The translations under genes were made by a program, and so were the position numbers. Positions 1,473 to 61,344 of a stretch of 64,000 nt of DNA are shown here, in pieces. The stretch is taken from positions 10,106,001 through 10,170,000 of the forward strand of contig OZ059900.1 of the NCBI GenBank assembly GCA_964057225.1, given 5' to 3'. Under the pieces are notes generated by a model that was given only the letters and a program-made list of their open reading frames with translations, was not told the origin of the DNA and made no database searches. The stretch is from Auanema rhodensis (Eukaryota > Animalia > Nematoda). How positions within the stretch are numbered: the first letter of the stretch is position 1; every line of letters starts with the position of its first letter.

Positions 1473-1862
1473 TTAAGTTTTTTCAAGGAATTGCTGGAAA
1501 AGGCTATTTTTTCTCAAAAATTTCTTTTTTTTTCACGTGGATAAGCGTGAACATTGATAACAACTTAGAGAAAAAGTCATTCGTTGTCAAAAAGCCGAAA
1601 ATTAATATATCGTGTTCAGATTTGCAATTAGAATTAGACAGCTGTAAATGTTTTCAATTTTAGCCAATGTTTCGGTTTGTATGCCTTTTGACTGAATATC
1701 ATATTTCCGAAAAGGATTATTCTTAAATTGGTTGCTTACCATTATATAGAAGGTGATATTCAATATTATAATTAACAGGATAATTTGAATCAAGCGAACG
1801 ATAGCACGCATCCTGCGCAAAGGATTAAGATTAATTGCTTTCAGTTTAGTCGTTCGATCCAT
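1473..1862 (-). CDS. Small 2-TM family paralogue A (3 exons), downstream gene of the minus-strand pair
   Basis: TTTAG|AGA-ATG. Exon 1 MDRTTKLKAINLNPLRRMRAIVRLIQIILLIIILNITFYIM ends at a GTAAGC donor. Exon 2 (1641-1537) LSNSNCKSEHDILIFGFLTTNDFFSKLLSMFTLIH shares FLTT...KL with paralogue E2. Exon 3 QFLEKT*. The 3' exons are less certain. Confidence 0.62.
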
Positions 1863-2083
1863 TCTCTAAAGGTTTGCTTAATTGGTATAATGAGCAAATG
1901 TTAGGTATATGAATATAGCATAAACTATATGAGATACAGAGAGGTTTAGAGAGAAAGTAAGATTGAATGCTTTTATCAAGTCATATGAAAATCAAAAAGA
2001 GAATGAAAAACAAGATGTGAAATCATAAATGGTAAATGGTTTTCAAGACAAATACGAAAAGTCTTGTTGTTTCATATAAATGA

Positions 2084-2570
2084 TTATTCAGCTTCAGGGT
2101 TTGTTCTTCCTCTTGTTATGGTTGTTAGAACTCTGTCACAGTACTGTACGAAACAATTCCTAGGAGTTATTGTCAATAAAATTATTTTGTATTGTGCATG
2201 TTTACCAGTATCCATAGAATAATATGAATACAACAAGTGTTGTTGATGACATAACTGAGTATGCACCCAAGGTAGTAGCAATGGTTACACATTTCATTTC
2301 TTCATACTATAACTTGTTGGTTTTTATCAAGTATTATTTCAAATTTTTCAGGATTTTTTAAATTTTTTTTCAGATTTTAAATGAAAAGAACAGTATTTTA
2401 ATGCTTTTTTTGCTTGTTTTTCTATCAAAAATTCAACTTACAAAAGTCATAATCACCAAGAAACAAAAGGTTGTTAGTAGATAGAAGAACAGGATGTGTA
2501 GAATCCCTGTGATCATGTTTTGCAAATCCCTCGTTGTCCAAGATGTTGGACTGCTTTGAACTTCATCCAT
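2084..2570 (-). CDS. Small 2-TM family paralogue B (3 exons)
   Basis: TTTCAG|AAATC-ATG. Exons 2570-2442, 2306-2206 and 2159-2084 splice in frame: MDEVQSSPTSWTTRDLQNMITGILHILFFYLLTTFCFLVIMTF-YEEMKCVTIATTLGAYSVMSSTTLVVFILFYGYW-NCFVQYCDRVLTTITRGRTNPEAE. Colinear with E1 at 7214. Confidence 0.82.
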
Positions 2571-2698
2571 GATTTCTGAAAATTATCGAAATTTGTACAA
2601 GCTTATGAAAGTAATAAGAATGAGAATAACGCCCTTAAGAGCAAAATACAGGTAAATTCTAAAATTCTAGACGACCGCTGGTCACCAAAGCTGGCATA

Positions 2699-3485
2699 CG
2701 AATGATTGAGCTCTCAGTTAATCGGCTTTATATAGGCGGCTGCTAACGCACAAAATCAAACACCAAAATCTCTTATGTGCCTTTGAGCCTCATTATCCAA
2801 AATTATTTCATCATTTTCATACAGTCTCTAGCAGTTTGGGCGTGGCTTAAAACAGAAATTTTTGTTTTTTTGCCGAAGTAGAATTTTCAAGCCAAAAGGT
2901 CATGTTTTTTCATAATTCCTTTGAGATTATAAAAGTTTTCGCTTCAGGTAGAACCGGAACTATTGTATAGCGCAAGCTTTTTGAAAAGAAAATCATAATA
3001 ATCACGTTTTTACCTACTTTGATACTTCAAAAGAACGACTGAAAATTATAATGTTGTGGGAAGTAGGGATGCTCAGAAATGCTCATGGGTGTCATGAAGA
3101 GACAATTCGGTTAACTAGGTCATTCACCTCAAATTTCGATATTTTAAAGAAAATTTGAATTTTGAGTTCATCCTTATGCCTATAGTTTGACGTACTCGTA
3201 TCTCTCGAAAATTAAGAACTTTACCTCAGTCTCAGCAAGCAATAGAAAGGTTTACCTCTTATTCTTCTTTTTTTCGAATCAAAGTTTTGACCACATATAT
3301 ACTGAAGATAATATTTATAATTTTGTTTTTAAATCAAACTAATCCGTATAGTTCTACCTCCTTGAAATTATTTTATTTATATTTCAAAATCTCTTAATGA
3401 GTCTCCTTGATTCAAGGAATCACTCAATTTCTCACGAATGTTCAGAATTTCTAAATAAAATTCAAATTCTGAGCACATGCTAACG
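2699..3485 (-). promoter_or_regulatory. Duplicated promoter cassette, copy 1 (drives B-A leftwards)
   Basis: Reverse complement of 6281-7067. Contains TATATAA (near 2728-2734), GGGCGTGGC (2838-2846) and an Inr-like TCATTCG at the repeat end. Confidence 0.8.
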
Positions 3486-4004
3486 AATTGAAATAAACAA
3501 GTTGACCGAGATTTAAACATAGGATAAAAATTGATTCTGCACCAGCTATATGATTAACCATTTGTATGATTTTGAATAATAATACAATGATCTGAAAAGA
3601 AATCAAACACGAAATTATAAAATTAAAATATTATAAAACAATTGGAGAGAATAACACTTAACGCTTCATGAAAATAGTAATAAGTCATTGTTTTTTCAAA
3701 CTTGAAAATAAATAAAAGTTTATAGTTAATAGAAAAAAAAGAAAGAAATTAAAATATATCATATAATTAAACAAATACTTGAAATAATTGAAATACGTCT
3801 TCACACATAATGTATCGAGATAATAAATAATCAATCAGATAACTCACCTATACTTTCATTTTTACCATTTCATCCGAAAACAAAATGAAAGGAATAATTG
3901 GTTTTGATAATTTCAATTATTGAAACTAATTTTAACTTTATTTTTAAACTTTATTAACATATTAAGTGAAAATCTTTTGTTCAATATGGAACCAGCCACA
4001 GAGA

Positions 4005-4377
4005 TCAAACCACAGCAATATTCATTTCACGCAATTGATTGCCAATTATCCTTGAAATGAGACTAGATAAGAAAACTTTAAAAAGATGTTCGTAAATACC
4101 ATGCGTGAATAGTTTCTCTGTATGTTAAGTAAAGGAAAATTGACATGCATAGATATACAATGAAGATATTGAAAAAGATTTCCCAAGTCAAAGTTGCAAT
4201 CTACGGAATATTATGCAAAAAAAAATTAACTAAACTTGAACTTACGAAAGCATTTACAAAAGCAAGTACGAATGTAAGACCAGCAAATATTATCAGAATA
4301 CATAAAATGTATTCGTAGATAGGTGGATCAACATACACACGTTGAATACGATGACGTGTATCAATACAATAGTTCAT
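4005..4377 (-). CDS. Small 2-TM family paralogue C (3 exons)
   Basis: TTCAG|GAA-ATG. Exons 4377-4246, 4200-4100 and about 4050-4005: MNYCIDTRHRIQRVYVDPPIYEYILCILIIFAGLTFVLAFVNAF-IATLTWEIFFNIFIVYLCMSIFLYLTYRETIHAW-IIGNQLREMNIAVV. Shares A.VNA and TWEI...IF with paralogue F. Confidence 0.75.
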
Positions 4378-4976
4378 TTCCTGAATTCTTCAATTTAATG
4401 TATGAAAAATAGAAAAACACGACGTTAAGCACATCAACATAAAAAATTAGCTGATATCGGTGAGTAAATTAGTAAATAGTTTGATTTCTGGGAATTTTAA
4501 ACTTTGAATATAAGAGAAATATTGAAACTCTACATCAGAATAGAACATACATGTGTACCTGAAGACGTTAAATATATACACTGAAGCATAAGACGAGCTA
4601 GTGGAAAACGAAGGAAAATAATTAAATTATACCAATATAAAGTTTTTATATGTATTCAATACACACATGAACTCTAATTCAATATCAATGTTAACATTTT
4701 CCATAAATGTTATTAAATCACAAACAAATTATTTTTTTATTATTACAATTACATAAACTATGCTGAAGTAAGATTGAGTGTGACTGTAATGCACTGTATT
4801 CATATACGATAACATCAAGAAGTAATCTAAACATCGATTTTCAACAGAAATTCGAATTTCGAAGGAAATCCGGTAGATGCCCTGATGCTGTAACATTTTT
4901 AGATATTCGGGTTCATGAAGATAATTCAAAATCAAAAAAGAAAGAATTTTCGGTACGTGGAACTGTTCGTTGTAGA

Positions 4977-5475
4977 CATAAGGATGAACTTAAAATTTGA
5001 ATTTTCTTTAAAATATCGAAATTTGAGGTGAATGACCTAGTTAACCGAATTGTCTCTTCATGACACAAATGAGCATTTCTGAGCATCCCTACTTCCCACA
5101 ACATTATAATTTTCAGTCGTTCTTTTGAACTATCAAAGTAGGTAAAAACGTGATAATTATGATTTTCTTTTCAAAAAGCTTACGCTATACAATAGTTCCG
5201 GTTCTACCTGAAGCGAAAGCTTTTATAATCTCAAAGGAATTATGAGAAAACATGACCTTTTGGCTTGAAAATTCTTCTTCGTCAAAAAAACAAAAATTTC
5301 TGTTTTAAGCCACGCCCAAACTGCTAGAGACTGTATGAAAATGATAAAATAATTTTTGATAATGAGGCTCAAAGGCACATAAGAGATTTTGGTGTTTGAT
5401 TTTCCGAGCTGGCTACTGCCTATATAATGCCGATTAACTGAATCATTCGTATGCCAGATTTGGTAGCCAGCGGTC
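4977..5475 (+). promoter_or_regulatory. Duplicated promoter cassette, copy 2 (shorter; drives D)
   Basis: Direct repeat of about 6588-7067 and inverted repeat of about 2672-3178. GCCACGCCC near 5309, TATATAA at 5421-5427. Confidence 0.8.
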
Positions 5476-5591
5476 TCGTATTTGAATTTCTTATCAAATT
5501 TTTTTATTTTCTCGTTTTCTCGTTTTCTTCATTTTCTTTTATAATATATAAGTTATGCATCAATGAAACTTGCATAAATTAAAACACAGAA

Positions 5592-5915
5592 ATGGATCAC
5601 CGTCTTGCCGCTCAAATGGTTCTCATGCCTATACTCGGAGCTCGTTCAGTTGCTCGCATTGCACTGATTGCACTTCTTCTGATTTTCATGGGAATGACCT
5701 TGATTCTATTGGTAGGCAAGCAGAAAATTAGTCACATTTTTGAAAATTACTGCTACTACAGTTCAAGGATTTCTCTCGTCAAATGTTTGGCAGCATTGGA
5801 AGTGTTTACGGTTACATAACTGTAATCAGCATTATCTTCAAGGTGAACAAGTTGTTTAGCACTTGGTGAGGAGAAAAAAAGTTTTCAAATTTCTAAAAAA
5901 AGTTTCAGGCAATAA
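5592..5915 (+). CDS. Small 2-TM family paralogue D (3 exons)
   Basis: Exons 5592-5711, 5762-5865 and 5909-5915: MDHRLAAQMVLMPILGARSVARIALIALLLIFMGMTLILL-FKDFSRQMFGSIGSVYGYITVISIIFKVNKLFSTW-Q*. Close paralogue of E2 with the same 104-nt exon 2. Confidence 0.78.
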
Positions 5916-6280
5916 CGAACAATACCCAGACGTTCTTCTACAACATCTTTGAAGAATTTTTACTTGTTTGTTTCATGTTGAGAAATAAATAATCCATTGT
6001 TGAACTTGTTTTACTATGAAACATCGATAAAATGAAATATTACTTGAATTCATCTCATCAAACATTCATAATAATCAAATCAAACTTGAATCTCTCATGA
6101 ATATCCAAATCAAAAATAACATGAAACAGATGATACTGTACGCAATAGAATGTGCTCAGAGTTAGGACTTTCTTAAAAATATTGGATTTTGAGATAAATG
6201 ATCTGAGTCACCGAAGTGCTGCTCCATTGCACTCCTCAACAATTCTGAAGATATCACTTCTTCTTCTACAATAATGATTT

Positions 6281-7067
6281 TGTTAGCATGTGCTCTGAAC
6301 TTGAATTTTATTTAGAAATTGTGAACATTCGCAAGAAACTGAGTGATTCCTTAAATCAAGGAGACTCATGAAGAGATTTTGAAATATAAATAAAATAATT
6401 TCAAGGAGGTAGAACTATACGGATTAGTTTGATTTAAAAACAAAATTATAAATATTATCTTCAGTATATATGTGGTCAAAACTTTGATTCGAAAAAAAGA
6501 AGAATAAGAGGTAAACCTTTCTATTGCTTGCTGAGACTGAGGTAAAGTTCTTAATTTTCGAGAGATACGAGTACGTCAAACTATAGGCATAAGGATGAAC
6601 TCAAAATTCAAATTTTCTTTAAAATATCGAAATTTGAGGTGAATGACCTAGTTAACCGAATTGTCTCTTCATGACACCCATGAGCATTTCTGAGCATCCC
6701 TACTTCCCACAACATTATAATTTTCAGTCGTTCTTTTGAAGTATCAAAGTAGGTAAAAACGTGATTATTATGATTTTCTTTTCAAAAAGCTTACGCTATA
6801 CAATAGTTCCGGTTCTACCTAAAGCGAAAGCTTTTATAATCTCAAAGGAATTATGAGAAAACATGACCTTTTGGCTTGAAAATTCTACTTCGGCAAAAAA
6901 ACAAAAATTTCTGTTTTAAGCCACGCCCAAACTGCTAGAGACTGTATGAAAATGATGAAATAATTTTGGATAATGATGCTCAAAAGCACATAAGAGATTT
7001 TGGTGTTTGATTTTGTGCGTTAGCAGCCGCCTATATAAAGCCGATTAACTGAGAGCTCAATCATTCG
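6281..7067 (+). promoter_or_regulatory. Duplicated promoter cassette, copy 3 (drives E1-E2)
   Basis: Near-perfect inverted repeat of 2699-3485. GCCACGCCC at 6920-6928, TATATAAA at 7033-7040, TCATTCG at 7061-7067. Confidence 0.8.
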
Positions 7068-7213
7068 AGCGCTAGACTCCATAGCGGGCGGTTTGGTTGC
7101 AATTTCGACTCTCATTTCCTCTCCTTTATTTCATAAAAGCTTCATATAAATTCTGATTACTCTTATACTCTTAAACAAAGCCACAACAAGTTCTTTTTCA
7201 ATATTTAGAAAAT

Positions 7214-7623
7214 ATGGAACGTTTCCCGAACAATCCTCCTGTACTCGATGAAAGAGATTTGCGAAGCATGATCAAAGGCGTTCTACGCATCGTGATTTTT
7301 CTGCTGACACTAACTCTGGCGTTTCTAGTCACAATGATGATTGTAAGTTATTTAGTTTATCTCAAAAATATAAAAAAAACATGCTGTTCTAGCGTGAAGA
7401 GTTGAATTGTCAAATGATTGCTTACGCATTTTTCGTTCACTCATCTGTTTCGGCTGCTGGAATTATCCTTTTCTTGTCTTTTTATGGATATTGGTAATAG
7501 TAAATTTTAAAAAAATGACAAAAAAATCTGTGTTATAGGAAAGACTTTAAAATTTTTTGCAAAAAGATTGTCACAGCCATAAAATTAGTAAGATCAGCTG
7601 AACCGACTCCAGAAACAGTGTAA
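7214..7623 (+). CDS. Small 2-TM family paralogue E1 (3 exons, 104 aa)
   Basis: TTTAG|AAAAT-ATG. Exons 7214-7342, 7393-7493 and 7539-7623: MERFPNNPPVLDERDLRSMIKGVLRIVIFLLTLTLAFLVTMMI-REELNCQMIAYAFFVHSSVSAAGIILFLSFYGYW-KDFKIFCKKIVTAIKLVRSAEPTPETV. Confidence 0.83.
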
Positions 7624-7760
7624 TCGACTACTTTACTGATACAACGCAAAATCTCTCATAATTTCATGATATTCACCATTTTCATTTCAATATTCATATA
7701 ATTTGTCTTGATAAAAGTATTTAATCTCCATTTCTCTCACTCTTTTCCTGCTGTGCGCTT

Positions 7761-7788
7761 TATAGTGTATGCTATACCTACATATCTT
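7761..7788 (+). promoter_or_regulatory. Ur-element-like intercistronic signal (short stem-loop plus TAYYTT)
   Basis: TATAGT-GTAT-GCTATA hairpin followed by TATCTT, about 45 nt upstream of the acceptor AG at 7830-7831. Related hairpins at 1914-1929 (minus), 9099-9114 and about 10397-10422. Confidence 0.55.
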
Positions 7789-7836
7789 TCACAAACTCAT
7801 TTGCTCATTGTGGACCTAACCAATATTTTAGAAAAA

Positions 7837-8162
7837 ATGGATCATAGAATTGGCGCTCATGTAAATGTGAATCCTCTTCTGAGAATTCGAGCAACGCTTC
7901 GTTTCATTCTCATCATTTTCATGCTCATATTCTTGGGAATCTCTTTGACTTTTCTGGTGAGTGAACAGTCATCACTAATCTCCCTAGGAATCATGATCTA
8001 CAGTTTAACAATGTTTCTCGCCAATCGTTTGCCAATATAGGAGTTGTTTACTGCTTCTTAACTACCATGGCTGTTATTCTCAAGCTCAGCATTTTATTCG
8101 GCTTTTGGTCAGTTGTAAATTACATATTTCTCGACTTAAGGAAAAGTTTTAGGGAGCAATAA
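7837..8162 (+). CDS. Small 2-TM family paralogue E2 (3 exons), downstream gene of the E1-E2 pair
   Basis: TTTTAG|AAAAA-ATG. MDHRIGAHVNVNPLLRIRATLRFILIIFMLIFLGISLTFL-(8004-8107)FNNVSRQSFANIGVVYCFLTTMAVILKLSILFGFW-EQ*. Confidence 0.78.
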
Positions 8163-8597
8163 TGAGCATACAAATAATGGACCTAATTTGCCATCTTCAA
8201 TTCTTCGATGAACATTTATTCCGCCGTCTTCGGTTTTCACCCAAACTTTTCAGACTTGATTACATTCATTAATATATATAAAATGTGCTTGCAAAGAAAT
8301 AAATATTTCATTCTTTCTTTATTTTTACTGTAAGATGTCAAATTAACCAAATTATAACTTAAATACTGCTTCGAAAACGTTTCAATCATAACTTATGAAA
8401 TGCTTAATTGACTTGTGACGAAATTAAAGTTAGAAAAGGCGGGACATCCACGAACGGAAGCTTTAGGAGATGAGATATGTTAGTTATATCCAATCGTCTC
8501 ATCCGGACAGCGCTACTACTGCTGTGCTACATCAAAACTACTACAACGACTACTTCAACAAGTCCCTTTTAACTTTTGAAAATAAAATAAAAAACTT

Positions 8598-9021
8598 ATG
8601 GATTTTGTCTGGCCATCATCTATAATGCCTAAGCTTACTGTCAATCGTGTATTTGGTGCCCTTCTTCTCATCTTTTTATTTATCATCTGTATCGCTCTTG
8701 TGAACGCAATCGTAAGTTTACATCTTTCACAATTATACAGCCAAAGTCAACTACTACAGTCAAAAGATATGACTTGGGAGATTATTGTTTACATCTTCTT
8801 CATCTTCTTCTGTCTCTCGCCACTGGCAATCTTGGCAATTATTTCTATGAGCGAGTATTGGTATAATTGAGCTAAAACATGACAAATAGATGTTTTGAAT
8901 ACAAACGTTTAGGAAAAGCATGAGCGACACCATCAAGACAATGATGGGAGTTGCTTCTGAAACTGCTGAGGTTACAACTCCCACCATGGATCCGATTGAA
9001 AATTGTGTTCCAACTCACTAA
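8598..9021 (+). CDS. Small 2-TM family paralogue F (3 exons)
   Basis: Exons 8598-8711, 8760-8860 and 8913-9021: MDFVWPSSIMPKLTVNRVFGALLLIFLFIICIALVNAI-SKDMTWEIIVYIFFIFFCLSPLAILAIISMSEYW-KSMSDTIKTMMGVASETAEVTTPTMDPIENCVPTH. Confidence 0.8.
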
Positions 9022-9163
9022 ACACACGATATTTTGCTAATGTTCGTGATGCAACCTGTTAATAAGAAATTTGTAAAGTGTATTGTTTGACTCAAATTTA
9101 TAGTTAACGCTATGCCATATTGTGAAATGTTCATGATTTTCATTCTAACATATATCTAGAAAA

Positions 9164-9496
9164 ATGCCAAGTCTCGCTAATCTACTAAGAGAAGAAAACC
9201 GACGTATTCGTCGCAACATGCGCATATGCTTGGGCGCTGCTCAAATCTTCCTAATGGTCATGCTGTTCATTTTGGTTCTGAACATGGTGGTAAATTTAAA
9301 ATCCTATAAGATGTTCAAATTGCGTATGTTTCTCAGCTCAGAGAGCTGTCTTATGAAATTTTGGAATACAGCTGCATCATCTACACCATTGTTGCACTCA
9401 TTTCGGTTATGAGCCTCGACGAGATTAATGAGTTGAAGTGAGCTTACAACTTAATTCAGAAACTAAAAAGACATTTTCAGGGAACGTATCGCTTAA
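9164..9496 (+). CDS. Small 2-TM family paralogue G (3 exons), downstream gene of the F-G pair
   Basis: CTAG|AAA-ATG. MPSLANLLREENRRIRRNMRICLGAAQIFLMVMLFILVLNMV-(9337-9437)LRELSYEILEYSCIIYTIVALISVMSLDEINELK-ERIA*. AATAAA near 9612. Confidence 0.78.
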
Positions 9497-10464
9497 TAGA
9501 ATTGAGACAAGCAGAACAGTATCCGAACAACTTCATATAATCATCACAATCCACATATAATCAATTATATAATCTCTCGTATTCATTATGATCGTATTAC
9601 TGTAGTTTCTCAATAAACTTTATCTAGTTGCCTATTTCTTCATTTGCGTCTTTTAGCAAAATTTTCTGCCTCATTAGTGTAACATCCAAAAGGTTTTCGA
9701 GTAAAATATAAAATATATAACATAATTAATATCATTACGACAATACTTGGACGTCTTCGTGACGCTATAAAAATAATATAAATGCCAGATAGCTACAGTA
9801 CTACCTTCTAATCAGAGTAATTAGACGACATAAACTTTTGCGAGAGAAATTTTACGTCAAAAATAAATGTTATATATCATTAGCAGAATGTCATATACCT
9901 ATTAGTTAATATAAGGCTGCAAATATAAGGCAGAAAGTTTTCTGCAACGACTGAGAGAACGACGTCTTCTACACCACTCTGCTTGGAGTAATACTCTATT
10001 CTTCTTCAACTAATCTATTATAGCCAATTCTTTCCATTTGGTTTCTTCTACCCGTTTATACATACACATGCCTCTATTTCTTTTAAGATCATTCTTATTT
10101 CTTTTTCTATCTCCTCGATACTTTTCTAACCTTCTATACTTTTTATCCCGTAGACAACCATCCGGTTGAAAATAGCTATGTATACATATATACATAGCCA
10201 GTTTGAGCTTAAAAGCAGAAAAACTCTCTCAAGTAGCTACAATCTTTCTTTCCTATTTTGCATATATTCACTTCATCGGTAAATTTCAGCTCCACCATGA
10301 GTTTGATCATTTTTTTTTGGGGGCGTGGCACTTTACCCTCCTCTGATAAAAAACTTGTCCATTTCTCAAGCTAATATTCTTGACAGATATCGGAGAATAG
10401 TGCTTGCTCTACTTCATATCTTTCACTACCACTATTCCTTGTTTTATTACCAAAGTTTTAGAGA

Positions 10465-10837
10465 ATGAGACGCGACATCAATGATCCACATGTTAACTGC
10501 GATGGTGTTCCGAGACGTACGTGCCGAGGTGTTCTTCGAATAACTTTAGGCGTTGCCGCATTACTGCTGACCATACTGTTGGTTGACTCATTGGTATGTT
10601 CCGAAACTGTCTTAAAACAGACAAAATGCAACTCATGTATAGGTGAGAGGATTGACATTCGAACATGTTGTGTACACCTTCATCATCTATGGCTACATGT
10701 TCATCCTTCTTCTCTGGGGCTTTGGCGAGATATTCGCATTTACTCTCTACGTCAACGTGGAACCAATAAATCCACGAGAAAGCTTTGAGATGTATCGTGC
10801 GTATAACGGAATCATGGTTCACGAACCGACTCGTTGA
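10465..10837 (+). CDS. Small 2-TM family paralogue H (2 exons; intron 2 absent)
   Basis: TTTTAG|AGA-ATG. Exon 1 to 10593 (GTATGT donor), exon 2 10643-10837: MRRDINDPHVNCDGVPRRTCRGVLRITLGVAALLLTILLVDSL-VRGLTFEHVVYTFIIYGYMFILLLWGFGEIFAFTLYVNVEPINPRESFEMYRAYNGIMVHEPTR. AATAAA at 10858. Confidence 0.8.
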
Positions 10838-12309
10838 TTATGTTCATTAGTATGTGTAATAAACATGAATACCTGTTACTTATTTGTCACATAGTTAAGC
10901 AGTAAACAAACGCACAAACAACCAATTAGAATAAAAAACACTAAACTTTTTTTGCCCTTTGTGTTTTTGACCACATTGAAAAACAATATTTGAGCATTGA
11001 CCAACAAATTTTTAAATTGAGAAAATGAGTAAACAAGCAGATAGTAATCATATTGGCATATCTGCATTTGAAATAAAATATTTGGAAGGGATTTATACAA
11101 TTTCATCAAATACTTCATGTTCATCGAATGCGAAGAAATAAAAGTAATGAGGTAGTTTAAGAAGAAACATTACAAGAATTCTTTGAGAGCAACTTTAAGG
11201 CCTTTACGACGTGACGTACATATGTATATCCATCAATCTATTATGTATATGCTGTTATGCCATAAGGAAATACTTGCAATAATTTAGTTTTTTTTTCATT
11301 TTGTTGGTTCAGCTGATCCAAAAAATAACCTCACGAACTAATATTGTTCCTACATAAACTTGTTGAAAATTAGATGTCGTCATTGAAAAAACGATTAAAA
11401 CGAGTAAAACGGAAGAATTATCAAAAAAACGAATGAAAATCGAAGTTTCTAAATAAAGAACGTAAAACTACTACTTCCTAGACGGATATACTTACGGTTT
11501 GAAATTAATAGAGAATTTCCTAAATTTTCGTATTCCGGAATTAATTTTTTTTACGTTTTTCACCTTCTTTCTATTCTCTCTTTTTTATGTTCGGTTATCT
11601 TTTTTTGTTTAGAATTCAATTTTGAAGGAAATTATAATAAAAATATCGGGTAACTATTGAGATTAAGAGATGGAAGAAAAATGAGTGAGAGACTATAGAT
11701 CTGGAAAAGCGTTTGCGTAACTTTTCGGAATCTACGGTATATTTTAATATTTTTCACATATTCATTTAAAGAGATGTGCTAATTATATAACATATCTATA
11801 GAGTAGTCACATATCTGTTTCATAAATTAGCAGAACTCTTCTACATAACCACATAACCACATATCTACACTTATTATTTGAGAGATCTCAGATATTTTCT
11901 CAGAGTTTACTTTATGGTATTTGCTTCTCACTTTTCTTTCTACTATTTCAGAATCATGTTAATCAACACTCAAATATACACAGAGTTTTACAGAGTCAGA
12001 GACAAAGATGCAGAGAATTTCAATTCAACAGGTAAAACTCTTTCGGGAAATATTTTAAAATGAGAAAGCATGGAACTAGAAGAGAATCAGAACAGGTAGC
12101 CTTGTAAAAAAATCTCATAATGAATGGGCGGAGCTCAAAAGGTAGAATATTAGGAAAATAATGAGTTTTAGAGATAAAAGGAAGTCAAAATCACATAGGA
12201 CCTGAGCATAAAAGGCTCAAAACTGGTAGATATCTCATATTTGAATTTTTCTCTCTTTTTTTGAATGTTCGTTGCTTTGCTTAGTAAAATATTACTTACA
12301 ATTTTTTAG

Positions 12310-17189: not shown

Positions 17190-17519
17190 TTAGTATGTAA
17201 ATAATATTGATAAGCTCCCCATACACCAATAACCATGAACAGAGTCAAAACGCTGATTAATACGCAAAATATTAACCATTTTTCCTGTGATGCACTTAAC
17301 TAAAATTACAACAAATATAATAATATACAGAATAGAGTAAAGACTTACATCATCTGATGCCAAGGATGATGACGCTAGCACTAATACAACAATAATAGTA
17401 TATACAAGTATTAGTTTAATATATGCTTTCCAATCTTCTGAATCACATGTTGGTAATGTTTCAGTCGTCTGCACAGTATTTGTGCTGTCTGTGAAATGAG
17501 ACATGTTACAATGTTCCAT
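17190..17519 (-). CDS. Putative isolated small 2-TM protein
   Basis: ORF from ATG 17519 (MEHCNMSHFTDSTNTVQTTETLPTCDSEDWKAY...) with two hydrophobic helices around an SSSLASDD loop. TCTTAG acceptor just upstream. More GC-rich than its flanks. Confidence 0.45.
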   Translation of the reverse strand: MEHCNMSHFTDSTNTVQTTETLPTCDSEDWKAYIKLILVYTIIVVLVLASSSLASDDVSLYSILYIIIFVVILVKCITGKMVNILRINQRFDSVHGYWCMGSLSILFTY

Positions 17520-20263
17520 TTCACTCAAGTACCTAAGAATATTTAATAAAAGTTGAAAATGAGTAAGAAAATGAAGCATAAACAAAGAATTTTTTTAACA
17601 GTTACTTTTTTTTTTTTTGAAAATTAAGAAAAAAATCAATAATTTATTCTTATCGTTTTTCTAAATAATAGATTTTGTACAAATATGTCTAGTTTCAAGA
17701 TAGAGAAGCTCATGATTTTGCAAACTTGTCTATCTCTGACGCAGAAAAAAAAACATTTGAAACTATTCTTACAATTTTGGTTATTATTATTCACAAAAAA
17801 TGACGAATGGCCTGATTTTTCCGACAGTCTTTCATGACAAATCATATAAAACATTTCACATATAAAATTATTAAACTAAAAAATGAATAGTTAAAAAAAT
17901 ATAACAAAGATTTATTATATTATGATTCTGAGCAGGTTTGAAAGTTATGAAATTTTTCATGAGATTATTAAAAAATAAGAGATGTTATAGAGTTTTTAAC
18001 ATATAAAATTGCAAAATGAATGAAAAAATAGAAAAAGTCTATAAGTATAGTTGTCAAAAAATATGTAATTTGATTAAAAATTATTGAGAAATATATTAAA
18101 TTATAAGTTTGTTTTGGTAGTTAATGAGCAATTAATTAAAAAAAAATGTATTGTCACATATTTCTAACATACTCTCTAAACAGTGAAGCGTTTTCAATTA
18201 GAAGGCATTACTGAAAAATGTTAAAAAGCGCTGGCATTTTCAAAGTTAAACTGATAAAATTAGAAAAACAAAGCTTAAGCTTCCAAGGATTGAATCTGAT
18301 TGTTTTAAACGAGAATATCAGATGATATATTCAACTGTGAATGTAATTCATTCATGATATATGTATAATAAATATTATTTTGATTTTATTTATATTTCGA
18401 AATGAGCTAATGCCTTCTATTGTATAATGTTTTGATATATTTATATGATTATCAAAACATTCACATAGTTAACGATTAAAGAAGAAATGAGAAAAATGAA
18501 AAGAAATGAAGAGATATGCATAAGAATAATGAAATTCTATATAATTTAAATATATTGGCAAAAACTTACTAATATTAAATTGTCTGAATATGAAGAGATA
18601 TTCGCAAAATGCTAGTCATCCATCTGACTCGGCATCCTCCTATATACAGTCAGCATATACATATATTTGTGTTTCATCCGGCTGCATATGAGCCAACACA
18701 GACATGCTGTAGAAGAATATGCTGTGCAGATGTACATGGATGCAAGTACGTCTGTTTTTCAATATATGCCTGACATTTTTACATTTAAAAAAAAGAAAAA
18801 GAAAAAGAAATGTCTTGTGTCGGCATTGGTTTATTGTTTTTTTTTGTTGGCCGGTATGACTAACACACAAAAAGGCATTTGTGTGTGAAACACATTTAAA
18901 CGAATGTTCGCGCGTGATCAATTCAAGGAACATGACTCTTTCACTTTGTTTACGTGTTTTTGTATTAAAATTCACAAATATGATTACTTTTTTCCTGTTA
19001 ATATCATCAACATAAGTATAAAAATTTTAATTTATTGATGTTTCTCATGATTATCCTGCTTGAAACAATAGAAAACTATGCAATATAGGGCTTACTAGGG
19101 ATTTATTGAAATCCTTGAGATAACGAGGCAAAAAAAAGTAAAAAAAAACAAGAACAAAAGAAATTGATGACACTATGGATGTTAATGAAAAACAACTTAT
19201 ATATTGAAGAAAATGATGATGCAAATATTACAATACATGATAAAGAAAAGAGGAAGAAGTTACCAATGTTAATTTGGTTGCCAATTGACTAGTTATCAGG
19301 AATATAGGAATATATATATATATTTATAGATATAAGTAAATATATCTATATATATATTAACTTATATCATATAATATTCAATAGGAAAATCATAATGTGT
19401 CTAGAAAAAATGAAGGAATAGCATGATTTTGAATGATCCAATAGTTGGAGCATAAGAACAAACGATTGGGGATGACAAGAATATTACTATGCTATGGAAA
19501 AATAAAAAAAAAGATGATTGAATATTATAAATATTAATAGAATAGTTATTAGAAAAAATTAAAATGAGAGAGGGGGTATGCACGGGAATAGGGAAGGGAG
19601 ATGGAATCGGAAGTATTGGAATGAGACGAAATAATATAATTTGATAAAAAAAGAATGTATGTGATTTAAATAGGTAAAATATAATATGATAGAAGCATAT
19701 ATACTATACTATACTATACTATATGGATATAGTATATAGGGTATGGAGCATAATATCATCACGGCTTGCATATAATATATAGATAATCATATACTATATC
19801 AAAATACAATTATGATATAAAACTATTCACACAGTTTGACAAGAAATATGATTTGTTAAAGGCAAGTATGGTAATAAACGGGGAGATATTTTAGGGAAAG
19901 GAACGTCAAAAAAGAATTGGTTAGGAATGTGGATAGAAACAATTGTCGTAATATCCGGAATGGTTATCATAATAGAAAAAGAAAGTGAGAGAGAGAGAGA
20001 GAGAAAGAGAGAGATAATGGTAGAGATATAGAGATGAGTCAAAATGCGGGAATCAAACATAATTAAGTAATACTTACAATGAACACAGATGAAATCATTC
20101 GAGAATTATAAAACATTCAAAATTCAATGTATATATATATGTAAAATGTACTCGGTTTCTTGATAATATTTCCTTTATAATTATATATTTATATTCATAT
20201 AATTGTACTGTTTTCTGCTGCAATCGCTTGCTCTGTTATGTTTTCTATTTCAAAAACAAGCAT

Positions 20264-23200: not shown

Positions 23201-26200
23201 ACTCCTCATCAAGTTCAATGAGAAAGGTGACTATACACACATGAGAGATTGGAAAAAGAAACGAGGCACAAGGATACATACATAGTAGTGAAGAGATGCT
23301 GATAGCAGCAATGACAAGGCATAAGACAAGATGGAACCTTGTCAGTCAGTCATACAAGGCGTGATGTAACCAACGTCAAGTTGTCACTAGCCAATCAACT
23401 AGACCGCTATGCGCCAAGGTTAACCGCCAGAATATGGTTTTCTGATGATAACAGCCTTTTGTATTTTCAAAAAAATAGACAAAAGTAAAGAGTTCTCGAT
23501 TGATAAAAATGTATTTTAGACATTGCAAAATATTTTACTGTACCTGTATCCTGGCTTCTGGTAAACCAATCTTCTGTGCTAGTCGTTCACGTGCGAATAC
23601 GTCGGGATAATGGGTTCGTTCAAATTCTGTAAATACATGTAATTGTATTTCTTTTACATTATAACATAGTAAATGTGATAATTTGGAGAATAAATAATTA
23701 ATAAATACATGAAACATACCTTTTTCAAGGGCTTCTATCTGTTCTTGGCTAAATGAGGTTCGATTTCGTTGGAGTTTTCGTTTCAATCGCATTCGAGCTG
23801 CTACATCTTCATCAGAATCAGTTGATGGTTTCACATCCTCATCAAGAATAATGCAGGATTGTTCTGTAATAATTAATATACATATATCATACAATTTTAA
23901 AATAAATCATAAAAAAATATATTTTTTGACTTCATTTTGGCTGTTTCAATTAAATTTTTGAAAGAAAAAATAGTACAATTCGTTTAATGAGATAAAACTT
24001 GAAATATTTTATAATATTTTTGGATAAGTTGAAAGAATTTATTATTATAAGATTATGAAAATATTGTTTGAGAAATATCCTACTTCGTCTGATTGTTGGA
24101 GCTTTAATAGCCAGAGGTTGAGTGGATAGCATTTTAATAAGAATAAGCTAATATATATTTATAAAATACAAATATTTAGATATTTATATTTTAATATATA
24201 AATGTATATGTATATAAATATCTCTAATGAATCTGTGTCAAAGATTATTGCAGATTTGTATCAAACATATACACACGTAATTACACGTCAAAGTATCAAA
24301 TAATGATTAATTCTAGTAAAATTGAATAATAAAAGTACAAAGATATACTAGCGATACTATGTATATATCTGTAAGCTGTGTGCCGTATCCTGCGATATGG
24401 AATAAACAGAAGTAGCAGTAGGATGATGCCTAGTACAGACTATCAATCAAAAGTAATAAAATACTTCGAATCGCTTCTTGTGTAGGCAAGAAACAACGAC
24501 ACGGAATACAAGAGGTGGTGTGTGAGAGAGAGAAAGAGAAAGAGAGAGAGAGGGTGGGCAAAGGACTGGTAGCAGTGATGGCGGTGGTTGTGTCTTGGAG
24601 TCTCTCTTTCTGTCTCTCGTTCGTTTGTTCTCCTTTTTCTGGTTGTAAGTCTATCGTTTTTTGTGTCTTCTATGGCTGTTTGACTGTCGAGGCAGAAAAC
24701 AGAAAACGATTTGTAGGAGGGAATACGATGGACTGTTCAAACTGACGAGAACGATAAGAGGCAGTAGTAGCTAGGATGAAACAGTTGTCGACCTTTTTCT
24801 CGTTGTTGCTGAAGTTGTGGGCCGAGATTGCAATGATGTACGTCAAATACAGTCGACCAGTGTGAATGTTGCGAGAGGGAGCACGCAATGCCAAGCAAGA
24901 TAGAGGCCGAACTCTCTTTCTCTCTATATTTCTCAATGCGAGACGAGAAAATCAGCGAAAGATGAAGAGTGAGAGGAAAGATTGTTGGCGTTGATTATTA
25001 AATATTGTACGCAAACGAGATACGCTAACTCAGTCACGTAGATAATGCGTGAATATGATGTATAGATAGACAGAGTGATCTTGGAACGGAAGGAAGTAGG
25101 TAATTAGCCGGTTTTCACCTCCGTAAGCTTGATGAGCAACGACAGCAGATAAGCTAAGCGTGCGACAGCTAGCAGTAATCAACGTAATATAATTAACGTG
25201 TAAATTATAATATTATCGCGTTAATTTCGTTATTGTTGTTAATATTTCGGGAAAATAAGCAGACACAATTACTGCTGTAATGAAAGGCGAATAGATAGAG
25301 CTGAGTTGAGAAGTTCAGCCAGTTACTGTGGATCTGAATGGTCACTAGCAAACTGCTGACGATGGGCCGTTCGTCAAGAATCTGGGGCGGGACATATATG
25401 CGTATGTAGTGAAGGTGGTCTTCCTAGAGGAGATAGCTATAACATAGTATAGAAAAATTGGAGAACGCTGAGAAAAATAGAATAGAGTGGAAGAGGAGTG
25501 AGAGAGAAGAAAGAGAAAAAGAACTAAGATATAGTCAGCCAGTATGAGAGTAAAAAAATTCGTTTTGAATACTATTTCTTGTCGTATGCGCTTATTTCTA
25601 TCAACTGTTTAGAGAATTATTTTGCTTTTTTTTGTCGATTTAATCAACAAACCGTCATTTACAACTGTATACTGATATCAGTAAAAACCGACAAAAAAAC
25701 GACTACAACGTGAAAGGTTGCTTGACGGAAAAGAGACAGGGTACATGACAATCTTGCAGTCCATTCAACAAGCAATGCTGCAACGGGTGGGGACTGACTT
25801 TCGAACTCATCATTGGCGTAGACAAGCGTGAATAGTTTTTTATTCATGTCAAGCATCATCAGCTCTTAATTCAATTTCATACAATGTGACAGGCCTCTCG
25901 CTTTCCTGCGATTAGAGTACCATTAACGAACATATCATCATAATGAAAATAAACTTAATGTCCGCAAATTAGATAGATCAACATGAGCGTAAACCCGAGA
26001 AAAAGAAACAATTAGCCTAATGTATGATAGATATATGACACATTTGTGCTGGCAAATTGCATTAAATCATTAATGTTCAGCATTATACAACTATTTGTTG
26101 CCTCTGCTTGGGCTGTATAGATTTTTTTGGTTAGTTTCATTGATTGTTCAAACAGTCTATTCCCTTTGCCCACACTTTGTTATTTTGCCTCCTTTTTCGA

Positions 26201-60595: not shown

Positions 60596-61090
60596 AGTAG
60601 TATAGGAACGAGGGATTATAATACCATTTTCGACATTTTGCTCTGTAGAACGTTTTTTCTTTCTCCGATGACAGATTTACAACACTTTTTTCAAAAAAAT
60701 GTGAAATGAGTAAATTTTAAGAGGACTAAAAAGTGCTTATTTTCAATAATTTTTATACATTTTCAACCATTTTTTTGTTGAGATGTCGATTTCATTTTTT
60801 ATTTTCTATTTTCATGCTTAAATACTCAAAAATGTGTCATTTTTACACTTTTTAGAAAATCAGTGGATGTCGAAGGATGTCGATTTCTTTTAAAAAGTGG
60901 TATTATAAAATTTATACTTTTTAAATGACGAATCTAAGATTCGATAAAGATCTAAAGCCATTAACAAACTTTGATCTTCTAGAATTAGTAGACTTATTAA
61001 AGATCAAGAATTTCCGTGGCATCTTTATGAGAGATACTTTGCCTACTAAAATTTTGAAAGAAGAAACTGGTATTATAAATTTAGATTCTT
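60596..61090 (+). repeat. Left terminal inverted repeat
   Basis: Reverse complement of 62597-63102 apart from an 11-bp indel and a nearby substitution, as far as I could see by eye. Confidence 0.93.
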
Positions 61091-61344
61091 CAGAAGGTAA
61101 AGGAACTCATTGGGTTTGTTATTCCAAGGACGCTAAGAATAAAAAGATTTATTATTTTGATTCCTTTGGATTGGATCCTCCATTAGAACTTCAAGAATAT
61201 TTGAAAAATGGGAAAGATAAAATACTTTTATCAACATTTCAAATTCAAGAATTTAATACACACCATTGTGGTTATTACTGTTTACTTCTTTTAAAGTTAT
61301 TAGAATCTTATGATTATCGAAAGTCAGTAATTGGTCTGATGTGA
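60925..61344 (+). CDS. Adenain-like (clan CE) cysteine protease, Maverick PRO; intronless, 139 aa
   Basis: Motifs FRGIFMRD, IINLDS...GTHW (His), YYFDSFG (Asp) and Q.....CGYYC (Gln oxyanion and Cys) are all intact. TATTATAAAA at 60901. Confidence 0.93.
   Translation: MTNLRFDKDLKPLTNFDLLELVDLLKIKNFRGIFMRDTLPTKILKEETGIINLDSSEGKGTHWVCYSKDAKNKKIYYFDSFGLDPPLELQEYLKNGKDKILLSTFQIQEFNTHHCGYYCLLLLKLLESYDYRKSVIGLM

Follow-up and report, generated by a model that had tools for sequence, protein, structure and literature searches.

Nine small tandem genes of the nematode Auanema rhodense probably form an old, species-restricted family of two-helix membrane proteins

In a 64,000-nt window of the A. rhodense germline assembly, nine small genes of 76-107 codons each lie within about 9.4 kb (1473-10837; Table 1). 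We re-derived the gene models independently with our own parser; all coordinates refer to the window, and the splice junctions are predictions. The cluster is flanked by a soluble guanylate cyclase gene and a homeobox gene (Pfam identifies only the homeodomain), the latter of which we take to be Pax-6/vab-3. Neither the window nor the 10-kb pieces sampled upstream, out to 1.1 Mb, are repetitive, except for one piece 50-60 kb upstream in which 38% of 16-mers are repeated. A study of this species describes retained, gene-rich DNA as non-repetitive and eliminated DNA as repeat-rich, low-coverage blocks bounded by a break-site motif (10.64898/2026.08.27.747507). Since the cluster occupies non-repetitive DNA between the guanylate cyclase and homeobox genes, it probably lies within the somatically retained part of the genome.

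Table 1. Predicted genes and upstream promoter blocks of the cluster (window coordinates)
Feature	Position	Strand	Details
Gene A	1473..1862	-	82 codons; exons 1862-1740, 1641-1537 (105 nt, phase 0), 1493-1473
Gene B	2084..2570	-	101 codons; exons 2570-2442, 2306-2206 (101 nt, TG/G), 2159-2084; intron 1 of 135 nt
Gene C	4005..4377	-	92 codons; exons 4377-4246, 4200-4100 (101 nt, TG/G), 4050-4005
Gene D	5592..5915	+	76 codons; exons 5592-5711, 5762-5865 (104 nt, TG/G), 5909-5915
Gene E1	7214..7623	+	104 codons; exons 7214-7342, 7393-7493 (101 nt, TG/G), 7539-7623
Gene E2	7837..8162	+	77 codons; exons 7837-7956, 8004-8107 (104 nt, TG/G), 8153-8162
Gene F	8598..9021	+	107 codons; exons 8598-8711, 8760-8860 (101 nt, TG/G), 8913-9021
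Gene G	9164..9496	+	80 codons; exons 9164-9289, 9337-9437 (101 nt, AA/G), 9481-9496
Gene H	10465..10837	+	107 codons; two exons, 10465-10593 and 10643-10837
Promoter block upstream of B	2699..3487	-	98% identical to 6279-7067; TATATAAA (TATA) box 164 nt before ATG
Promoter block upstream of D	4973..5441	+	shorter copy, 95% identical to the other two
Promoter block upstream of E1	6279..7067	+	98% identical to the B copy

The genes share a rigid exon architecture, as expected of one paralogous family. Every exon 1 has a length divisible by three, so that intron 1 is in phase 0 in all nine, and exon 2 measures 101 nt (B, C, E1, F and G) or 104 nt (D and E2) in seven. Intron 2 interrupts a Trp codon (TG/G) in six genes (B, C, D, E1, E2 and F) and an AA/G codon in G. 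All predicted introns are GT-AG and mostly 43-50 nt long, with intron 1 of B an exception. The second donor of E2 (GTCAGT) is unusual, and the 48-nt intron 1 of F is itself open and in frame. All nine reading frames are open in DNA of 31% G+C, where about 8% of random codons would be stops. By hydropathy, two hydrophobic segments are present in eight genes and a single strong peak in gene A; the N-terminus carries 3-7 Lys/Arg residues in A, C, D, E1, E2, G and H, and seven of the nine proteins start with Met followed by Asp, Glu or Asn. An earlier note on this DNA had described the same layout (a mostly basic N-terminus, a first membrane segment, a phase-0 intron and an exon 2 carrying the second segment), together with the two exon-2 lengths, the split Trp codon in six genes and frames kept open despite divergence, and our models reproduced each of these. 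We scanned 158 kb on both strands with an architecture template (a first exon of 105-150 nt that starts with ATG and runs to a phase-0 GT, a 40-140-nt intron closed by AG, and an open 101- or 104-nt exon ending in TG/GT). The matches were exactly the six TG/G genes, with none in the remaining ~148 kb, and the architecture is therefore beyond chance. Overall, the genes of the cluster look real.

Sequence similarity extends to every member. Pairwise comparisons against shuffled sequences join all nine genes through a chain of significant links (A-D-E2, D-C, C-F, F-E1, E1-B, E1-H and H-G), each with z of at least 4.4 and with 0-2 of 300 shuffles reaching the score. Two pairs are clear paralogues, namely B-E1 (z 15.8 and 12.4) and D-E2 (z 13.9 and 12.5). 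Gene C is linked to D through exon 1 (z 6.2) and to F through exon 2 (z 6.4), and exon 2 of F is also linked to E1 (z 6.1) and G (z 4.8). Gene H is linked to E1 through exon 1 (z 6.6) and to G (z 4.4 and 5.9). Leave-one-out profile scores were weak for several members, and the unity of the family therefore rests on these transitive links and on the shared exon structure; conserved columns are also present in the exon-2 alignment. The weakest member is gene A, whose exon 1 resembles those of E2 (z 9.5) and D (z 5.3); its exon 2 reached z of only 2.3-2.8 and was not matched by the A3 exon-2 profile. Helix 2 of this gene is degraded, and the gene as a whole looks partly decayed.

An exon-profile search of the 181-Mb genome found no further copy of the family. 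A candidate for a tenth member, on contig C5, reached 21-22 bits against the exon-2 profile and was rejected, as it had no upstream exon or ATG. An open reading frame at 17190-17585 that encodes two helices was likewise rejected, as it had no significant similarity to any of the nine.

To search for relatives elsewhere, we used the exon translations singly; joined proteins served only for frames, hydropathy and pairwise similarity. A single two-exon profile, for which exon pieces were aligned with the F read-through, was dropped because MAFFT overlaid helix 1 on helix 2. Ten exon translations and the F read-through, searched with E limits of 10 and 1, matched no Pfam-A family at its gathering cut-off, and the only sub-threshold matches were to CD225 (14.7 bits against a cut-off of 27.1) and O_Spanin_T7 (11.9 against 25). 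There was no match in the PDB at E up to 10 and no usable match in the ESM Atlas. The exon-1 profile, run against 1.84 billion proteins, matched only a 4487-residue repeat protein, in which profile positions 1-23 recur nineteen times, and we judged this match spurious. Word searches with exon 2 of H, the F read-through frame and exon 1 of E2 (queried within its read-through frame) found nothing in protein collections; these queries failed to retrieve even their own genes, so the family is absent from annotated collections. The earlier proposal of a two-segment micro-protein family with no recognised relatives is thus borne out, in that pairwise similarities join all nine genes, the genome copies are confined to the cluster and none of these collections yielded a relative.

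These searches also bear on whether the nine could be very diverged members of a known family of small membrane proteins, such as CD225/dispanin, Pmp3/RCI2-type proteolipids or another nematode family masked by the short exons. CD225 (IFITM-like; PF04505) proteins are likewise small and have a short loop joining two hydrophobic segments, and exon 2 of F matches the profile weakly (E 0.033). However, that match covers positions 6-26 of 68 and falls within a hydrophobic helix, the other eight genes have none, and the remaining exons gave no Pfam match at E up to 10. A match across the profile in most members, including the conserved intracellular loop, was not found. Together with the empty PDB, ESM Atlas and billion-protein searches, this makes membership in a known family extremely unlikely. 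Pmp3/RCI2, Hemotin/Stannin and class II holins are proteins of 50-110 residues with two helices and charged termini that oligomerise or bind larger membrane proteins. They share the size and two-helix layout of the cluster proteins with no detected sequence relation, and we use them as a working analogy for mechanism only.

The strong dissimilarity among the nine proteins appears to be mainly a matter of age, with weak purifying selection in addition. In the closest pairs (B/E1 and D/E2) dN is 0.45-0.53 and dS 1.3-1.8, giving dN/dS of about 0.3 with synonymous sites near saturation. Identity at codon positions 1, 2 and 3 in ungapped exon alignments is 0.57, 0.65 and 0.45 for B/E1 and 0.56, 0.75 and 0.49 for D/E2, and when the pairs are pooled, conservation at position 3 falls below that at positions 1 and 2 (Fisher P=0.0012). 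These values identify old duplicates under protein-level constraint. They lend no support to the earlier description of the family as rapidly diversifying. Introns, UTRs and synonymous sites have diverged as much as the proteins, so that the divergence can be accounted for without selection at the protein level.

The same figures weigh against the functions suggested in the earlier note (gamete or self recognition, pore-forming immune effectors, toxin and antidote), taken as a fast-evolving system for recognition or conflict whose divergence was driven by positive selection. Such a system could account for a taxon-restricted family without relatives, for tandem expansion with very low pairwise identity, and for small hairpin proteins whose polar helix-2 residues could line a pore. 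TATA promoters, typical of inducible genes, would fit as well, and Auanema sperm and sex-chromosome biology is unusual, according to the genome study (10.64898/2026.08.27.747507). Yet saturated dS, a dN/dS of about 0.3, and a least conserved third position are what old duplicates kept by purifying selection would show, non-coding sequence is as diverged as the proteins, and we found neither expression at 5480-10900 in three listed runs nor, within 1473-10837, an unrelated partner gene that could serve as an antidote. We therefore regard a recognition or conflict system as unlikely. PEEL-1, which the earlier note cited together with PMPL-1 as a precedent, is a small, lineage-specific, sperm-delivered toxin of C. 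elegans with four predicted helices, encoded by a single gene and paired with the antidote zeel-1; we know of no wider family to which it belongs. The cluster proteins resemble it as small lineage-specific nematode membrane proteins but differ as nine two-helix paralogues, a distinction drawn from layout rather than from sequence comparison.

Three genes (B, D and E1) share an upstream promoter block that exists in only three copies in the genome, all within the cluster and 95-98% identical; a transposon origin was rejected on this distribution. Between the E1 and B blocks, an identity of 98-100% gives way to background within the ~30 nt that follow the TATA box, which is about the expected transcription start. 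The three genes appear to have recently gained the same block by gene conversion or local copying, and expression is probably conditional and TATA-driven. GATA (TGATAA) sites are not enriched. It is also conceivable that the genes encode co-regulated hairpin proteolipids of a self-acting membrane system, for example one of toxin/antidote or gamete/embryo compatibility type, in which control regions are homogenised but differences between the transcribed parts are preserved or increased. Blocks of 98% identity that end at a fully diverged transcribed region would then point to a homogenising process rather than a plain conversion tract. We consider this very unlikely.

A YAG occurs 2-6 nt upstream of the ATG in eight of the nine genes, compared to a background of 14% (P=1.4e-6). 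Gaps between same-strand neighbours are 221 nt (B to A), 213 nt (E1 to E2), 435 nt (E2 to F) and 142 nt (F to G), in keeping with operon spacing (~100-400 nt), and the gap from G to H (968 nt) lies outside that range. Short gaps and AG acceptors just before start codons suggest a trans-spliced, possibly polycistronic organisation, with the putative units B-A, D and E1-E2-F-G, the last perhaps including H.

No listed sequencing run contains the stretch, and three species-labelled runs, whose kind was guessed (20 Mb of contigs in each resembles transcriptomes), gave no contig on 5480-10900 and only chance pieces of 19-23 nt. This argues weakly against strong constitutive expression. It would also fit relics or non-genes, that is, once-coding frames now silent or gene-like structures never translated, as would the failure of the H, F and E2 queries to match protein collections, the missing helix 2 of gene A and the unusual donor of E2. 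On the other hand, nine frames remain open at this base composition, every modelled intron boundary is GT-AG, codon-position asymmetry recurs in two independent pairs, and exon lengths are conserved although dS exceeds 1. Acceptor-like AGs precede eight of nine ATGs, and three promoters are recently homogenised and intact. That the cluster consists of relics or non-genes is accordingly improbable.

The reading we prefer, and hold to be reasonably probable, is a tandem cluster of nine old paralogues encoding hairpin membrane proteins that are, as far as is visible, restricted to A. rhodense. Judging from sequence rules, each gene would produce a helical hairpin of 76-107 residues with both termini in the cytosol. 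The N-terminus would be short and mostly basic. Helix 1, encoded by exon 1, would lead into a turn of ~5-8 residues on the opposite membrane side, and in most of the proteins this turn is acidic or polar. Helix 2, from exon 2, would begin with Glu/Gln and have an aromatic residue, mostly Tyr, near its middle, followed one turn on by Ser/Thr. The helix would close with an interfacial Trp, encoded by the codon that intron 2 interrupts, and the cytosolic tail after it would vary between 1 and 39 residues. The constant exon-2 length of 101 or 104 nt would then mean simply that insertions and deletions are not tolerated in the turn and helix 2, with no special genomic mechanism, and selection would act on hydrophobicity, on the length of the helices and on a small number of polar positions. 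Most likely the proteins act as small proteolipid-type subunits, which may self-associate or dock onto larger membrane proteins by way of helix 2's polar face.

Taxon-restricted families of small proteins are common in nematodes, and the cluster is a real but ordinary orphan family of this usual species-restricted kind, giving no pointer so far to a new mechanism. As in other nematode tandem families of this type, its genes are small, have short nematode-type introns and lack outside homologues; unlike them, it has a rigid exon and helix geometry and a promoter block freshly homogenised among three of its members. About 15% of A. rhodense genes had no homologue in the species compared, according to the genome study (10.64898/2026.08.27.747507). 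If expressed, the genes would make up an unannotated family of membrane micro-proteins in a nematode that attracts study because of its three sexes and massive DNA elimination, and would be a clean example of helix geometry freezing exon lengths while sequence drifts past recognition. In the promoter block copied in front of three paralogues that diverged long ago, control-region homogenisation is seen in a compact natural setting.

We re-derived the gene models independently of the earlier note, which had described nine small genes (A to H, with E1 and E2) of rigid exon architecture. In the rebuilt models A, B and C lie on the minus strand and the other six genes on the plus strand, and the stop codons of A (1473) and H (10837) coincide with the limits proposed for the cluster. 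Exon 1, which encodes the N-terminus and the first helix, measures 114-132 nt and is divisible by three in all nine genes, so intron 1 is always in phase 0. The values noted before for exon 2, which encodes the second helix, were recovered unchanged: it measures 101 nt for five genes (B, C, E1, F, G) and 104 nt for two (D, E2). In all of these except G, intron 2 splits a Trp codon (TG|G); in G it splits AA|G. Exon 2 of A is 105 nt in phase 0, and H has two exons. The models predict 17 splice junctions; apart from intron 1 of B (135 nt), introns are 43-50 nt long with TTTCAG-like ends, in the style of rhabditid nematodes. The window, C8:10106001-10170000, has ~31% G+C. A strict template (ATG exon of 105-150 nt, phase-0 GT, intron of 40-140 nt, AG, open 101/104-nt exon ending in TG|GT) scanned over both strands of 158 kb matched only the six genes with a TG|G split. 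Thus, both the rebuilt models and the scan bear out the cluster and its architecture.

Similarity in the majority of gene pairs is at the level of shuffled sequences, and a chain of significant pairs connects all nine genes (see the table). The exon-2 alignment has common positions at columns 5 (Ser/Thr), 7 (Glu/Gln), 16 (aromatic, six Tyr) and 20 (Ser/Thr), and the C-terminal exons of B and E1 appear similar by eye. Leave-one-out profiles gave weak scores for several members, so the unity of the family rests on transitive similarity and architecture. When exon-1 and exon-2 profiles were run against the whole genome (180,911,798 bases, 112 contigs), only genes of the cluster were found; the exon-2 profile missed exon 2 of A, whose second helix is degraded. 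A putative tenth copy on contig C5 (21-22 bits) was ruled out because it has no exon 1. An intron-less ORF at 17190-17585 on the minus strand of the window, 109 codons long counting from its first ATG, is family-like in layout, with a pair of hydrophobic segments and a short, acidic turn. It was rejected as a member, its similarity to every member being insignificant (best z 2.7).

Features of the cluster: copies of the promoter block, same-strand gaps between genes, and gene pairs with significant similarity (z against shuffled sequences)
Feature	Window positions	Location	Value
Promoter block, B copy	2699-3487	upstream of B	789 nt
Promoter block, D copy	4973-5441	upstream of D	469-nt part
Promoter block, E1 copy	6279-7067	upstream of E1	789 nt
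Gap B>A			221 nt
Gap E1>E2			213 nt
Gap E2>F			435 nt
Gap F>G			142 nt
Gap G>H			968 nt
Pair A-E2			z 9.5
Pair A-D			z 5.3
Pair D-E2			z 13.9 exon 1, 12.5 exon 2
Pair B-E1			z 15.8 and 12.4
Pair C-D			z 6.2
Pair C-F			z 6.4
Pair E1-F			z 6.1
Pair E1-H			z 6.6
Pair F-G			z 4.8
Pair G-H			z 4.4 and 5.9

Because their exon lengths are equal, B/E1 and D/E2 could be compared ungapped. In B/E1 the identity is 0.57, 0.65 and 0.45 at codon positions 1, 2 and 3, and in D/E2 it is 0.56, 0.75 and 0.49 (positions 1+2 versus position 3, pooled Fisher P = 0.0012). Nei-Gojobori estimates are dN 0.53 and dS 1.77 for B/E1 and dN 0.45 and dS 1.32 for D/E2, with dS undefined in more distant pairs. The codon-position asymmetry and these estimates indicate, at the level of sequence, that the paralogues are old and that protein-level selection acted on them. 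Random sequence of the same composition is expected to contain ~8% stop codons, so nine open spliced frames at such divergence would not persist without selection. The two pairs do not show the rapid diversification suggested previously, nor positive diversification, position 3 being the least conserved, and the proposed functions (gamete or self recognition, pore-forming effectors, toxin/antidote) found no support in whatever could be tested.

The predicted proteins comprise 76-107 residues; five start with Met-Asp, one with Met-Glu and one with Met-Asn. An N-terminus of ~20 residues, carrying 3-7 Lys/Arg in seven of the nine genes, would be followed by helix 1, a turn of ~5-8 residues (acidic or polar in most members) and helix 2, closed by the Trp of the split codon; a tail of 1-39 residues follows. 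By the positive-inside rule both termini would be cytosolic, and the constant length of exon 2 may reflect a turn and second helix intolerant of insertions and deletions.

The most unusual feature of the cluster is a copied promoter block, a near-identical stretch upstream of B, D and E1. The B and E1 copies are 98% identical and the D copy 95%; per 50-nt window, 48-50 of 50 positions are identical over nearly the whole block. Identity drops to background within ~30 nt past a common TATATAAA box, about where transcription would be expected to start. A dispersed transposon is ruled out as the nature of the block, since these three copies are the only ones in the genome. The genes behind it are long-diverged paralogues and D belongs to a different subfamily from B and E1, so the block has been copied across subfamilies, most simply by recent gene conversion or local segmental copying.

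A YAG just before the ATG is the usual appearance of nematode trans-splice acceptors. It occurs 2-6 nt before the start codon in eight of the nine genes, against a window-wide frequency of 14% among ATGs (P=1.4e-6). Judging from gene order and spacing, B-A, D and E1-E2-F-G(-H) are possible candidate units, with one promoter block ahead of each. The G-H gap contains a short AT-rich palindrome (10175-10200, arms GCTATGTATA / TATACATAGC), at which run contigs match over 23 nt by chance. These contigs come from three runs with the same species label (~20 Mb each, transcriptome-like, type guessed), among which 5480-10900 had only chance matches of 19-23 nt. The run data argue at most against strong expression of the cluster in those samples.

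Searches for relatives were made exon by exon, plus the F read-through, and hence had limited reach; at that level the family remains as unrecognised as first described. Pfam gave only sub-threshold noise (CD225, 14.7 bits, F exon 2; O_Spanin_T7, 11.9 bits), exon-level queries of the PDB gave no match at E up to 10, and word searches with exon 2 of H, exon 1 of E2 and the F read-through were equally negative. The single match of the exon-1 profile among 1.84 billion representative proteins was a repeat protein, judged spurious. Exon-level ESM Atlas queries returned no usable match, and we found nothing relevant in the literature on Auanema orphan or transmembrane families.

A soluble guanylate cyclase gene (C8:10103359-10104947, plus strand; HNOB, HNOBA and Guanylate_cyc domains) flanks the window immediately upstream. 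Downstream of the cluster is a homeobox gene, which we take to be Pax-6/vab-3 from a paired-type resemblance seen by eye, with Homeodomain exons at 23535-23894 (minus strand) and ~20.2-25 kb (Pfam Homeodomain, E 3e-11) and its 3' end ~9.5 kb past H. A tandem array at 1-1392, belonging to the family with TCAGAAAATGTTATTTTCTG... and built of ~384-522-nt units with internal inverted repeats, reaches to within ~80 nt of the stop codon of A. Rfam gave no match in the window at the gathering threshold. An ORF of 139 codons at 60925-61344 (plus strand) encodes an adenovirus-type protease domain (Peptidase_C5, E 1e-6) and probably belongs to a Maverick/Polinton-type element. Samples of upstream DNA, taken as far as 1.1 Mb away, are non-repetitive except for one piece 50-60 kb upstream, in which 38% of 16-mers are repeated. 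A preprint whose annotation comprises 11,943 gene models distinguishes retained gene-rich parts of the A. rhodense genome from eliminated repeat blocks (bioRxiv 10.64898/2026.08.27.747507), and the non-repetitive surroundings would fit the former rather than the latter.

The predicted hairpin membrane micro-proteins of the cluster form a family that is real, old and taxon-restricted. The guanylate cyclase and homeobox genes would serve as synteny anchors in other species.
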